Positions 16,576 through 26,047 of a stretch of 64,000 bases of DNA are shown here, in pieces. The notes below the pieces were generated by a model. The model made no database searches and was not told the origin of the DNA. It saw only the letters and a list, made by a program, of their open reading frames with translations. The first letter of the stretch is position 1. Each line of letters begins with the position of its first letter. Both the position numbers and the translations under genes were made by a program. Origin of the DNA: Lepidodermella squamata (taxonomy: Eukaryota; Animalia; Gastrotricha); contig JBLDXI010000054.1 of the NCBI GenBank assembly GCA_047495785.1, positions 2,480,001 to 2,544,000 on the forward strand, in the 5' to 3' direction.

Positions 16576-16788
16576 AAAATTATACAATTAATGCAATTCC
16601 ACCTTAAAAATCGATAAGATAGAAAAAAATAAACTGCAAAGAGCAACAGCTAGGTCCCCAGAGGCAAATTGCGACTGGCCTGAGTGATTTCAATAATTCA
16701 TCGATATTATTTACATTGTCAATCAACTACATAGCGAGACTTAATGCTACCAGTACATGAATCCGATTCAAAGTTTTTACTGTTCAAA

Positions 16789-17995
16789 ATGTTCTCGATA
16801 ATGATTTTTATTCTCGGAACAATCTGTAATGCAGAGGAAGACGTTAAATTTGACGCTGCAGCCACTTTGATTGACAACTGTCGCTTGAAGCCTGACGTTC
16901 TATCCCCATTCGAATTGCAAGGTCGATCAGCTAACATATCCGTCTTTTTCGAAGTCGATCGGCTCATGGATATCGACGACGTTTCTGAAACCATGTCAGT
17001 ATTAGGGGCATTGCAAATAGTTTGGCAAGTTGACTGCGTCGCTCAGCTGGCCGCTGATGCAACGAAATGGCCGCCGAATCTTACTATCCTCCAATTTGAA
17101 AACATCGGTGATGGCTTACCGCTGTGGCATCCACGGCTGTTCCTCCGCAATAGTTTGAACAACTACGGCATGAAAGGAGACACATTCACTGATATGATCG
17201 GCGCATTCCCTCACATTGGCCTATTCGCTATGTTTAAGGTTGGCCGCTTCGAAGTTTACTGCGATTTACATTTAGAACTATTCCCATTCGATCAGCAAGA
17301 GTGCTCGGTAAGAATCTCTTTTAACCATTGGTTCAAAATAAGCATAAAATCTTAAATTACAGATTCTGTTCATCACCGCTATTCGACCCTCTGCTATTAC
17401 CATTGAAAATGCTGGCTTCGTAACAATCTTGACGTCTTACCTAGGCACAAACAGTGTCTGGCAGCCAGTTCGTAATGAAACAATAATCGAAGTGCTTTAT
17501 TTCCCAATATCTGGCGAATTCAGCCAGGTCACGTTTACACTGGCCTTCAAACGGAAGCCTAACTGGGAGCTGCTGAATCTTCTGACGCCGAGTTTCATCT
17601 TTTGCTTACTCGAACTGTCCGTGTTTTTCATCCCAGCTAAATTGGCAGATAGGCCTGCATTCAGCGTTGCCATCCTACTCGCCTTTACTGTGCTCCAATC
17701 TCAAATCGTAGATAGCATGCCGAAGAGCCCTAGGACTATCATTCTTCAATATTACGTCCTTGGCGAGCTGATATTTGCTATGATCATAGTAATCTACGCC
17801 GCGGCTATGTGCTCCTACATTCGCCTGTGTGAAAAATCAGGCCGTCTAATCCAGCTACCGAAAATATTCAAACGCTCTCGGCCGGTAGTTTTGTTCAATC
17901 TGATCGATGTCGTTTCATTTATAATTGCTGCGATTGTTCTGTTTGCTCTCAACGCAATTACAATAGGCTACATCTATTTCAACATGCCTGCGTGA
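16789..17995 (+). CDS. Divergent Cys-loop ligand-gated ion channel subunit (copy 7); intron 17308-17362
   Basis: Cys-loop CDLHLELFPFDQQEC; ADRPAFSVAILLAFTVLQSQ. Start placed at the signal-peptide ATG; an upstream in-frame ATG exists at 16744. Confidence 0.93.
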
Positions 17996-18854
17996 CAATT
18001 AGATTTATTTGAAGTTATCTGCTCCGTCAAGTAATATCGTTATTAAACGTGAACATGAAGATAATTGAGAAGCCTGATGTTTCTGGAATTTTTGTAGTGA
18101 TATTAACTTGCAGCTTTTGCGGTAATATTGTTCGGAATATTGCTGGGTTCCTCAAATACAGAAGCTCTAGGGCCTTTGTTTTTTCCAGAATAACTTGCGG
18201 GAAAATAGCTTGGTTGTTCAATCGGGGGAGCAGATCAGAGCTCGGTTGCCTCCAAGGTTCATGCTTGGAAGGATCATCAGCGGATCGTAAAGTTCGTCTT
18301 TATTTTACCAATGTGTACAGCCTCGAGACTGCAGTACAAACAACTTATTTATTTTTCGGCAACCAACAAGTAATTATTCCAGCGTATTCGGTTTATCAAC
18401 GATTTTCCGCTTTTAAATCTCAAATTAAACTCAAATTAACCGAGCAGCCAGTTTGAGTAAAATGCGTATAGAGTATCATGCCATAATATTTGTACAGCAA
18501 TGTAACATGTCGTGTAATGTTTTCAAAACAAATTACGTGCTGACCTTGGCACCGCGCGCGTTTCTTGCAGGTTTGGGGTTGTTCTACTAAATCCAGGATC
18601 CTTGCGGGGGTAAACATGAAAGTGAAGTGTATTTGCATGTTTTATGCTATGCTGGTATTTACCGCTAGCAAGTCGCAGCTTGATTATTGAATTAACTGTC
18701 GAAAATCAATGCCAGGCCTAGTTTTTGAAAATCTAGAATTTCCTGTCATGCGCTTGGCATGATCGCCATAGCTGCCTAATAGGTTTGCAATTCTAATTTG
18801 TCAGTATTTGCCCTTCTTTTCAATCATTGAATTACTCTGCTAAACGTTTGTAAC

Positions 18855-19197
18855 ATGAACAAACCACTGCTAATCACGTTATTAGTGGTAAACTATCGCA
18901 TAGATGCATCCGAAATCCGAATCTAACATTATTCTATTACCATAGGTTTCCATTGCAGCCTGTGCAATCCAAGCTTGGAAGCAGGAAATCAAGGTAGCCG
19001 GTAGAAGTGTAAACATCAACCTGCCCCCACCTAGTGATCGCGAGGGGAGTGCCCAGCAGCCTAAGGTATCCGGTAGAAGTGTGAACATCAACTTGCCTCC
19101 GCCTTCTGATCGCCAGGGAAATGGTAAGCAGCCTGAAGAAGCCGGCAGAAGTGTAAACATAAACCTGCCCCCGCCGACAGATCGCTCGGCCGAATAA
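18855..19197 (+). CDS. Secreted repeat-peptide (neuropeptide-like) precursor with 3 x GR-SVNINLPPP[S/T]D-R; intron 18888-18945; not in ORF track
   Basis: Spliced 94-aa product MNKPLLITLLV|VSIAACAIQAWKQEIKVAGRSVNINLPPPSDREGSAQQPKVSGRSVNINLPPPSDRQGNGKQPEEAGRSVNINLPPPTDRSAE. Signal peptide, 72-nt repeat period, and differences between repeat cores are almost all synonymous in this frame. Confidence 0.85.
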
Positions 19198-19770
19198 GGC
19201 TTGGAAAAATATTTGAAACTAACAAAAGGCAAATCTATATTGGCGCGAGAAAAAAACTATTGGTGAAGGTTTCTATTTGAGGGCATAGCTCTCTGAATCA
19301 ACTGAATCAAGCAAAGTGTTCGTTTGCGAACGCTTTGCACTGCTGAACTGATTGGGGCTTTGTTTTAATAAATGCTGTATACATTTTTGGTGGTCCATCA
19401 TATTCGGGTTAAGTTGTAGAATTCGAAGACAAAGTTCGTGAATAGTGAATAGGGATCTAATATGGAGGGTCTCACGCGACTATTCTCTAAAACGACTATT
19501 CTCAGTCAGTAAGCAAATAATATTGCCACACATGAAATGTCTCCCATCTCCAGTATCAAAAAAGAGCTAAGGCAATACCATTTGCCAACAATACAATCGA
19601 TATTGGCGTCATTAATATAGCCTAACCTAGGGATAATTTTCTAACCATTCCCGAAAAAATCGATTGATGTCGCCGAAAGCTGTTAGAAACGTGAATATAT
19701 GCTGACAAAGGCATCAATTAATATGTGTGGGAAGTCGAAAATTCATTTTTTCCATCTGTAGGTAAAATTG

Positions 19771-20990
19771 ATGCAATATATTATGTTCCTGATCATAATT
19801 CTCGTAGCGAAAGTCATAGCCAGTTCTGCTGAGGAAGACGTCAAATTTGACGCTTCAGCCGTTTTAATGGAGAACTGCCGGTTGAAACCTGATGTCATGA
19901 GCCCATTCGAACTGCAAGGCCGGCCTGTTAACATATCCGTTCTCTTCGAAGTAGATCGGCTCTTGGAGATCAATGACGTTTCAGAAACAATGTCCGTGGT
20001 AGGCGTGTTGCAAATACTTTGGCAAGTTGACTGCGTGGCTCAACTAGCCAGTGACACGGTGAAATGGCCGCCGAACCTCCGTGTCCTTGTTTGGGAAGAA
20101 ATTGGCGATGGCTTACCCTTATGGCATCCAAAACTATTCCTTCGTAATAGTTTGAACAACTACGGGCTGAAAGGAGAAGCCTTTACCAACTTACTAGGCC
20201 TCTTCCCACACGATGGGCTGTTCTCTCTGTTTAAATTTGGTCGGTTCGAAATTTACTGTGATTTACACTTGGAGCTGTTCCCGTTTGATTTTCAAGAGTG
20301 CTCGGTATTTTTTTACTTGATCCTTTATCCTTAAAGATGAATGAATTTTCGCAGATGATGCTGCACACCGTTATCAGACCTTCGGTGATCAGCATCGAAA
20401 ATGCCGGATTCGTGACGCTCACTGCATCATATTTAGGCGCTAACAGTGCCTGGCAGCCAGTTCGCAACAAAACAAGAATAGACGTTATTTATTTCCCAAC
20501 ATCTGGCGATTTCAGCCAGGCAACGTTTACACTGGCGTTCAAGCGAATACCTAATTGGGAGCTGCTCAATCTTCTGACACCCAGTTTCATCTTTTGCCTA
20601 TTAGAACTGTCCGTGTTTTTTATCCCGGCGAAAATGCCTGATAGGCCTGCATTCAGCGTTGCCATTCTGTTGGCTTTTACTGTGCTCCAATCTCAAATCG
20701 TGAATAGCATGCCGAAAAGCCCTCGGACAATCATTTTGCAATATTACGTCCTTGGCGAGATGATATTTTCCATGATCATAGTAATCTACTCTGCCGTGAT
20801 GTGTTCCTACATTCGTCTTGGTAGAAAATCTGGTCGCCTGGTTCAGCTACCGAAAATATTTAAACGCTATCAACTTGTGGCTTTGTTCAACCTGATCGAT
20901 GTCATTTCATTCATTCTGGCCACCATTGTTTTGATCGCTCTTAATGCTATCACAATGGGTTATATTTATTTCAGCTTACCTCGGCTATAA
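19771..20990 (+). CDS. Divergent Cys-loop ligand-gated ion channel subunit (copy 8, close paralog of copy 7); intron 20305-20354
   Basis: Cys-loop CDLHLELFPFDFQEC; PDRPAFSVAILLAFTVLQSQ; in-frame 50-nt intron. Confidence 0.93.
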
Positions 20991-21109
20991 TCTCGTCGCC
21001 GTTGTAGGCTTCAAGGAAATATCCATAAACACTCCCGCTTTGAACAGTAACAAAATTGAGATTTTGTTGTATAAATATCGTACTGATGTCAGAAATTTGA
21101 GGGAAGCCG

Positions 21110-22470
21110 AAATTGACGACGTTTCGGAAACAATTTCCATGTTCTGCGATCCAGGCTTTGCTATTTCTTTGGCAAGTTGACTGCGTGGCCCCAACTGGTC
21201 AGGGAATCGTCGAAATGCCTGCCAAGTCTTACAATCCTCCAATTCGAAAATATCGGCGATGGCCTACCGTTGTAACAACTACAGGATGAAAGATGACACG
21301 TTCACTGGTGTCATCGGCTTATTCCCCAACATATGGGCCTATTCGCTATGTTCAAGGTTGGTCGGTTCGAAATTTACTGCGATTTACAATTGGAGCTGTT
21401 CCCGTTTGATTATGAAGAGTGTTCGGCATGTCGTTAAGCCAGAGAGCGAAGAACCGCTAGGGATGCGCTAGGGATCCCCACCAGTTCCATCGGTCCTTAT
21501 GGTGAGCTCAGTCAAAGACCAAAGGAGGTACCCTTATGTTGATTTTTGTTATCCTTACCAGTTCCGCGGTCCTACTTCGCTCTACATATGCTTCAAGCTG
21601 TATATATGCTTGGGAAAAATTATAGCAATTTAGCTGGTAGCTTTTTTGCACCAGATTTTTCCTAAATTCTCAAGAAAATTCTCAAGAAATCAGGTCATGC
21701 CTTGTTAAAAAAAAACTAATAAAAGGCCCGCTTTATCAGTGGGAGCGTAATTCACGGTGAGCATACAGTAAATATAGCGACTGAAAAGAGCAAAAGCAAA
21801 TGCGTTTTACAGAAATAAATTTTTCTCAGTGTATTTTCGACTCCGGATAAGTGATTGTTTCCACAGATTTCGTTCATCACAACTGCACGACTTTCCGCGA
21901 TCAAAATCGAAAATGCCGGAATTCTGACCCTCTCTACATCATATTTAGGCGCTAATAGTGCCTGGCAGCTAGTTCGCAATGAAACGAGAATCGATTTTTT
22001 GTACTTTCCGGTTTCAGGCGAATTTACTCAGGTCACATTTACACTGGTGCTGAAACGAAAACCGGATTGGCAGCTCTTAAATCTTCTGACCCCGAGATTT
22101 ATTGTTTGCCTCCTGGAACTGTCAGTTTTTGTTCCCGCTAAAATGGCTAATAGACCTGCTTTTAGCGTTGTAGTTCTGTTAGCTTTTAGCTTCAATCGCA
22201 AATTGTAAATATCATGCCTAAAAGTCCGAGGACCATTATTTTTGCAGGATTTTTGCTATGATAATATACGCTGCAGCCATGCGTTCCAACATCCGTCTGT
22301 TTGAAAAATCAGTTCGTCCGGTTCAGCAGCCGAAAATATTTAAACACTCACAGCCACGTGCTTTTTTTCAAACTGATCGATGTCGCTATTCATTTATAAT
22401 GGCAACTATTGTTTTGTTCGCTCTTAATGCAATCACTTTGGGTTATATTTATTTTAGCCTACCTGGGTAA
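21110..22470 (+). pseudogene. Cys-loop channel pseudogene (copy 7/8 type): 5'-truncated, multiple frameshifts, intron expanded to about 440 nt
   Basis: Fragments IDDVSETISM, WQVDCV, CDLQLELFPFDYEEC, YLGANSAWQLVRNET, LLNLLTP, RPAFSVVVLLAF and LFALNAITLGYIYFSLPG occur in different frames with stops. Confidence 0.88.
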
Positions 22471-24279: not shown

Positions 24280-26047
24280 ATGTTTGATTCAACATCCCCG
24301 ATGCCCTTTCGGGGTGAATCGCAAATAACCATTATCGAACTGTGGCGGTCAGGAGGAGATGCTCGCATTGTTGCTGAACGGATGGATCTTCTTGAAACTG
24401 CCTCATATCCTAGGGGTAAACTCGCCCTACTGAACTCACCAACAACACCATCATTACCCGGCACTTCGGGAGCAAACTACTCTAGTAACCCTCTTTTTGC
24501 ATACCAATACCCTCTATTCGTATGGGCTTTGACTATTATCTACATGCTCATATTGGCTACGTCGGTGGTTGCTAACTTGATCACCGTCTCGTTCTACGCA
24601 ATCAACCGGAAGTCTCAACATATGAGTGCAAATCCTTATGTTTTGAGCCTATTAGCCGCTGATTTAATCTGGCCGATAACGAACGTGCCTTATTCGATTG
24701 TCTACGCCTGGTCACCTTATTGGGTCTTTGGAGAGACTGCTTGCCAAGTTCTACCCTATTTACAGGTTGCTCTACCTGAGATAATATCGCTGACCTTATG
24801 CGCCATCGCTTTGGAGCGATATTTCACAATTTTACATCCTTTTCGTAACAATCCGATGCTAAAACCAGTTGTGGCCGGTATTACGATAGCCCTAACCTGG
24901 ATGGTACCAATTAGCGGCAATTTTTTCCTCATTTTCGCCCATGGGCTGTTTCAGCTGCCGGGCAGTCGAAACAACCTGTGCATTCCTAAGGCCATCGGAC
25001 TATTAAGCGCTCAACAAGTTACCACTTTCAAAATTATTCAGTCAGCTGTGATCCTAGTTGGAATTCCTGGCGCACTCTTCCCTTTCTGCTACGGTCAGAT
25101 CGTTGCAAAAGTTGTGAGATCTCAAGTAAGATTATTTCTAACAAATCTCCCTTAATAATGGAATTGATTAAAAAATATAGGTAACACTCACCGCTCGTGC
25201 CTCGACGGCTTCGCTCGCAATAGCAAGCATGCCAGGTATTCTGCGGAGGCCGAGCTTAGCAAATAACCAGCAGCCCATGCCCCTTAGCACCAAAAGGTCA
25301 ACCCCGGAGCATAGAACTCGAGTTGTCTCAGTGATAGCAGCTGCTGGTCAAATCGCCCATTTCACCTGCTGGGTACCGATAGTCGCTTTTCAGTTATGGC
25401 ACGTTACAAATGACTACCCTGCCCTATCGTCTAGCCAAATAGTGACGTTCAAATTGCTGACTCTTCTCGCATCGGCTAATCCTGCGTGGAACTCGCTTGC
25501 TTACACAGCTGTGCTACGTCACCGAGCTCAGCCTCAAAACAGCAGGACAGGAAGCCACGCTTCAACATTCAGCCTTATAGCTACTCTGGTCAAAAGTGGC
25601 GGGGGCAGTGCTCATGCCGGCTACTACAGATCCAGGGCCTGTTCAAACTCTCATCGGCCTAGCGTTACCAGTCCTGTGAGTAAAACTGCCCCGCAGATTC
25701 GGGTATCCGGCGACTTGAGTTATAACTCTGACTTCCTCAGCTGCAATGGCGGTACGCCGCGACGACACTCCGCCTACAACGCTGTGCCGTTTCAAGTCGC
25801 TCTAGAGCGGGTGCTTTCTCTGCCTGAGGATGCTCAGAGTCGGGAAATCAGCCGCCACACTTCTGATTCCAGCAAAGTTTGGCAGATTCGAGCGGATGCC
25901 ATACAGCGTGATAGTGTTTCGAAAACCGTATCTACCCGAAGTAATAAAAGCGGCGCACCTAGTCGCGTGTCTTGCGATTCACAACATGGTGGAATAATGC
26001 CACCGGCGCCCCCTCCTTCTAGACTGCAGCTATCCACAGAAATTTGA
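24280..26047 (+). CDS. Class A (rhodopsin-like) GPCR, neuropeptide-receptor-like; intron 25126-25180
   Basis: TM2 SLLAADL, ECL1 YWVFGETACQVLPYLQ, TM3 LTLCAIALERY, TM6 CWVP, TM7 ANPAWNSLAY, long Ser/Arg-rich C-tail; a 55-nt intron joins the ORFs in frame. Confidence 0.9.

Follow-up and report, generated by a model that had tools for sequence, protein, structure and literature searches.

The locus analysed here raises two questions: whether an unusually long gap in an array of channel genes of Lepidodermella squamata holds a short spliced gene, and, if it does, whether the repeated product of this gene is cut into small peptides or acts as a whole. The window, that is, the entire stretch of 64,000 nucleotides that was analysed (C54:2,480,001-2,544,000), is eukaryotic in character: its GC content is 41-43%, its GT-AG introns are short and its genes are spread across neighbouring frames. 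Positions 1-47600 are occupied by a tandem array of about 17 genes for Cys-loop ligand-gated channels, nearly all of them on the + strand. Most of these genes have two exons, with a conserved intron of 50-58 nt that directly follows a codon for Cys in the ligand-binding domain; the encoded channels have a very short M3-M4 loop and carry TM4 at the extreme C-terminus. The gaps within the array generally measure about 100-500 bp, whereas the gap between its two most similar channels extends over 1.77 kb and thus leaves room for one extra gene. When this spacer was compared in six frames with the remainder of the window, neither a remnant of a channel exon nor a second peptide gene came to light.

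The part of the spacer at 17996-18854 (860 bp) is present in a single copy in the genome, has no match in Pfam or Rfam and contains a + strand ORF of 135 codons (18049-18456), with an ATG at 18055. At 21000-22470, a degraded channel copy is found between two intact ones. Its fragments, 64-76% identical to the gene at 19771-20990, lie in several different frames with stops between them, and it is therefore probably a pseudogene.

The ORF list of the window does contain, as the initial annotation had stated, an antisense ORF at 18882-19232 on the minus strand. Behind this shadow, the same annotation had proposed a hidden + strand gene composed of an 11-codon exon, a 58-nt GT-AG intron and a second exon, and this model is borne out by the translations and the splice signals. 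The features of the locus are as follows.

16744-17995, + strand: upstream neighbour, a two-exon gene for a Cys-loop ligand-gated channel that ends with TM4 (stop at 17993-95).
18805-18854, + strand: possible 5' UTR, proposed from the sequence; it has no ATG and contains an in-frame TGA (18828-30).
18855-18887, + strand: putative exon 1, ATG and 10 further codons (MNKPLLITLLV), corresponding to the first half of the predicted signal peptide.
18888-18945, + strand: putative intron of 58 nt in phase 0, with a GTAAAC donor, a CTAAC branch motif and a TAG acceptor.
18946-19197, + strand: putative exon 2, 83 codons and TAA, encoding the remainder of the predicted signal peptide (VSIAACAIQA) and then three units of 24 amino acids.
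19367-19372, + strand: AATAAA, 170 nt past the stop codon; the interval from the stop codon to the next gene contains no other poly(A) signal on the + strand.
19771-20990, + strand: downstream neighbour, a channel gene that is the closest paralogue of its upstream counterpart (73-80% identity), also with two exons and ending with TM4.

The donor reads GTG/GTAAAC at 18887/18888 and the acceptor ATAG/G at 18945/18946. The branch motif CTAAC is located at 18923-18927, and the AG of the acceptor (18944-45) is the first AG 3' of it. Another AG, at 18957-58, was considered as an alternative acceptor and rejected; it is situated 13 nt downstream and is out of frame. The frame of exon 2 opens exactly at the acceptor, where it is closed by the acceptor's own TAG, and contains no ATG, so that it could be translated only through splicing to an upstream exon with an ATG. 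The ATG of exon 1 has an A at -3. It is preceded by the in-frame TGA at 18828-30, with no AG between the two, which makes exon 1 the first coding exon. An AG at 18803-04 (tttgtcAG), immediately before the possible 5' UTR, is a candidate spliced-leader or 5' acceptor. For comparison, the homologous intron of 12 neighbouring channel genes was collected: it measures 50-58 nt, with donors GTAAG, GTAAT, GTATG, GTAAC or GTATT and acceptors TAG or CAG. A 58-nt intron with such signals is thus typical of the locus. We consider it likely that the two-exon + strand gene is real, single-copy and an orphan.

Read side by side, the two exon translations begin with a basic n-region (MNK) followed by about 16 hydrophobic residues that run across the exon junction, and small residues at -3 and -1 (A-C-A or A-I-Q-A) would suit signal peptidase. 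The N-terminus thus has the make-up of a signal peptide, and the three 24-residue units can be read behind it, in agreement with the secreted precursor of 94 amino acids that had been claimed. The gene appears to be lineage-restricted, with a predicted secreted product of about 94 residues whose signal peptide is split by the 58-nt intron. Tandem Repeats Finder (TRF) reports a period of 72 nt, with 2.7 copies, 79% matches and no indels, and the 72-nt units found in the repeat search start at 18991, 19063 and 19135. Each unit contains a conserved core.

19000-19041, + strand: core 1, GRSVNINLPPPSDR.
19072-19113, + strand: core 2, GRSVNINLPPPSDR; four synonymous changes relative to core 1, and AGT replaced by TCT for Ser.
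19144-19185, + strand: core 3, GRSVNINLPPPTDR; followed by SAE and the stop.

The three cores differ at one residue only (Ser, Ser and Thr); the product combines several copies of a peptide with divergent spacers. The conserved part covers 14 of the 24 residues of each of the three units. Amidation, aromatic residues, basic residues and Cys are all absent from the core peptide. As had been pointed out earlier, it lacks a C-terminal amidation Gly, the core ending in S/T-D-R.

Of the 14 codons of the block GRSVNINLPPP[S/T]DR, eight differ between the units, seven of them only synonymously; the eighth is AGT, TCT or ACA (Ser, Ser and Thr). The complete set of variants comprises GTA/GTG, ATC/ATA, CTG/TTG, CCC/CCT, CCA/CCG, CCT/CCG, GGT/GGC and AGT/TCT/ACA, which includes every synonymous change listed in the initial annotation. 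When the 10 observed substitutions were placed randomly on the consensus, one or no amino-acid-variable column was obtained at P = 8e-5 without transition bias and at P = 2e-4 with a threefold bias. Between units 1 and 2, the ratio of synonymous to non-synonymous codons is 5:0 in the core and 1:5 in the spacer (Fisher p = 0.015), and the spacers are thus mostly changed non-synonymously, as had been stated. The pattern is specific to this frame: the corresponding core ratios are 5:4 in the antisense ORF and 3:6, 0:9, 3:7 and 0:9 in the remaining frames. Nucleotide divergence between the cores amounts to 14-19%, which indicates that the units are no fresh duplication. Both flanking Arg residues and the Gly are invariant across the three units. 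Comparison of these three paralogous units shows that selection holds the 14-residue block G-R-SVNINLPPP[S/T]-D-R constant while the spacers drift. Purifying selection had been proposed for the 11-mer; selection in that frame is upheld, but the conserved block extends beyond the 11-mer to the G-R and D-R at its ends.

Relatives of the product were sought exon by exon, with the exon 2 translation as the query. The translations of exon 2 and of the antisense ORF both gave blank results against a word-indexed collection of 5.8 billion proteins. A neighbouring channel used as a control found a best match of only 45% identity there, which implies that the collection does not include this species, and the blanks accordingly say nothing about transcription. 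A HMMER search of 1.84 billion representatives returned two matches, both to unrelated long repeat proteins and regarded as spurious, and a scan of metagenome contigs gave 475 pattern matches, none of which was confirmed. Pfam yielded nothing above noise, the ESM Atlas and a PDB sequence search yielded no match, and the core motif had no match in a full-text search of the literature. No homology to a described peptide family was found in these searches, consistent with the earlier remark that the peptide belongs to no recognizable family.

Within the animal's own genome (an assembly of 121.2 Mb in 151 contigs), this locus alone was matched when the protein, the entire 1.77-kb spacer or a degenerate NINLPPP pattern was used as the query, and Rfam contains no RNA family matching the spacer. 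The region is single copy and is neither a transposon nor a known RNA. Two NFNLPPP matches on another contig (C46) were rejected as unrelated, being located inside large Cys-rich proteins. The frames concerned are near-identical copies of a long, probably secreted Cys-rich protein, 16.6 kb apart (C46:1505500-1506500 and 1522100-1523100; positions 6-1001 and 2-814 of these pieces), each of which contains NFNLPPP.

What, then, would become of the product? Precursors of multi-copy peptides are classically built in this way, the peptide and its basic flanks being conserved while the spacers drift (PMC8557429), and since this layout is found behind a predicted signal peptide, we tentatively prefer to read the product as a processed prepropeptide, the precursor of a hormone-like peptide, a reading to which we give slightly less than an even chance. 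The signal peptide would be removed after A-C-A or A-I-Q-A, endoproteases of the secretory pathway would cut after the invariant Arg on either side of the core, and a carboxypeptidase would trim the Arg left on it. The products would be two copies of SVNINLPPPSD and one of SVNINLPPPTD, non-amidated and acidic, together with three spacer peptides ending in Gly, potentially amidated, as by-products.

The closest parallels are multi-copy proneuropeptides of invertebrates, such as the non-amidated pedal-peptide/orcokinin-type and AxxxDF-type precursors of spiralians (PMC8557429). Like these, the predicted product is a short secreted precursor in which the signal peptide directly precedes tandem copies, each copy is bounded by conserved basic residues, the spacers are free to diverge and the predicted peptide is non-amidated and acidic. 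Unlike them, it has single Arg residues instead of KR or RR, it is mostly off the P4/P6/P8 rule and it contains three copies only, and no sequence similarity to any of them was found.

The cleavage sites are the weak point of the preferred reading. In monobasic prohormone sites, a second basic residue is usually present 3-6 positions upstream of the cut, and the search pattern for amidated monobasic sites calls for a basic residue at P4, P6 or P8 (PMC8557429). All six sites flanking the cores are single Arg residues with Asp or Gly at P2. None is dibasic (KR or RR), and a basic residue at P4, P6 or P8 is found at one of the six, namely a Lys at P8 before core 3. Cores 1 and 2 have a Lys at P5 of the preceding site, and no basic residue is found upstream of the three D-R sites. 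An amidation Gly, which is common though not obligatory at the C-terminus of such peptides, is absent from the conserved peptide. The invariant Gly-Arg before each core, on the other hand, constitutes a signal of the amidation type for the unconserved spacer peptide that comes before it, a role that the initial annotation had overlooked.

A second peptide gene of the same contig, about 1 Mb downstream, provides a comparison within the animal itself. At C54:3537900-3544700, on the minus strand, an exon encodes a signal peptide and three KR-flanked copies of ARYLG (an RY-amide gene). This ARYL-amide precursor is likewise a small secreted protein with repeated identical peptides, but it has textbook KR-ARYLG-KR sites, of which the present gene has none. 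The animal thus uses classical dibasic and Gly sites, and this constitutes the main doubt about processing by classical convertases here. The departure from the monobasic rule, the KR and GKR sites elsewhere in the genome and the Gly-Arg before the core all weaken the reading as a processed precursor. Site-1 protease recognizes the motif R-x-hydrophobic-x. The sequence R-S-V-N resembles it, and the conserved Arg might then be a P4 determinant rather than P1. Of the claim that the locus bears the hallmark of a peptide precursor, the hidden gene, the signal-peptide-like N-terminus, the three repeats and the selection on the core have all held up; the release of three bioactive 11-mers is hypothetical, five of the six single-Arg sites being off the rule.

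A somewhat doubtful but serious alternative is that the gene is real and that its product acts uncut, as a small secreted repeat protein. The segment SVNINL alternates hydrophobic residues and Asn in the manner of a beta strand, and Arg before it and Pro-Pro-Pro-Ser-Asp-Arg after it could serve as 'gatekeeper' caps; three units might form a small sheet, or they might bring about assembly from strand to strand or bind trivalently, with mucus, the matrix of cuticle or scales, an adhesive or an egg coat as conceivable settings. In an AlphaFold single-sequence model of exon 2, short strands at residues 20-25, 44-50 and 68-74 fall on the three RSVNINL segments, but the model is poor (pLDDT 61, pTM 0.24). 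Besides the misfit of the cleavage sites with the prohormone rules, conservation outside the supposed peptide, in G-R and in the final R, is what would be expected of a structural or binding unit. Against this, the spacers, which make up 10 of the 24 residues, evolve almost freely, which would be odd for a folded domain; there are just three units in about 73 mature residues, and neither Cys nor any other stabilizing feature is present.

It is unlikely that there is no gene at all and that a 72-bp minisatellite in a long intergenic spacer happens to show an open frame, an ATG and a GT-AG pair. The databases searched contain no homologue. Repetition alone keeps frames open, three out of six in this case, and an open frame is therefore no evidence for coding. 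Codon usage does not discriminate between the frames either: the log-odds are 4.1 for the +0 frame and 13.5 for the antisense frame, with the 90th percentile of the null at 13.8, and neither is significant. This score was trained on the channel and GPCR exons of the window, hence biased towards membrane proteins, and was discarded. A coincidence would nevertheless have to account for a substitution pattern that is strongly specific to one frame (P about 1e-4) and contrasts with that of the spacers, for a frame that opens at a canonical acceptor after CTAAC and joins an ATG exon completing a signal peptide, and for an intron length typical of the locus.

Still within the processed reading, the peptides might be released but act externally, as a pheromone, a defence or antimicrobial agent or an adhesive-gland secretion, rather than as neuropeptides. 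A non-amidated acidic 11-mer that has none of the typical neuropeptide features, and is moreover an orphan as befits fast-evolving peptides of external action, would be compatible with such a role. The peptide is, however, neither cationic nor amphipathic and has no Cys, and in this it differs from the antimicrobial and toxin peptides that are known; we regard external action as quite improbable.

More ambitiously, a new family of signalling peptides could be founded by SVNINLPPP[S/T]D, or by the G...D block as a whole, released by an unconventional route, at the single Arg residues or through another protease, with its receptor among the neighbouring genes, either in the array of about 17 Cys-loop channels or in the GPCR 5 kb downstream. 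If this were true, the peptide and the neighbouring receptor gene would constitute a physically linked ligand-receptor pair. To our knowledge, a peptide-gated Cys-loop channel would be unprecedented. The GPCR, at 24280-26047, is of the rhodopsin type (7tm_1, E = 6e-24), and its best solved relatives are the histamine, adrenergic, orexin and NPY receptors (E about 1e-14), a mixture of amine and peptide receptors from which the ligand class is not assignable by sequence. We consider this proposal highly improbable, and for the present the location of the peptide gene inside the channel array counts only as a coincidence.

That the coding strand should be the minus strand is the least credible of all the alternatives: its 116-codon ORF (18882-19232), with three GGG[RK][LF]MFTLLP motifs, is the longest ORF and scores highest for codon usage, though not significantly, but it starts with TTG and has its first ATG inside the repeat, changes of its core are five synonymous to four non-synonymous, more than 500 nt separate it from the nearest poly(A) signal of the minus strand, the neighbouring genes are all on the + strand and its translation has no homologue in the 5.8-billion-protein collection.

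Taken alone, the gene is of an ordinary and familiar kind, of which it is an orphan member. If confirmed, it would enlarge the peptide repertoire of the gastrotrichs, which is almost unexplored, by another secreted peptide gene restricted to the lineage, and it would show that genes of this type are missed entirely by mechanical ORF tracks and by gene calling in the prokaryotic style. Its non-canonical single-Arg flanks would then be useful for testing how widely the rules of prohormone processing apply in this phylum.
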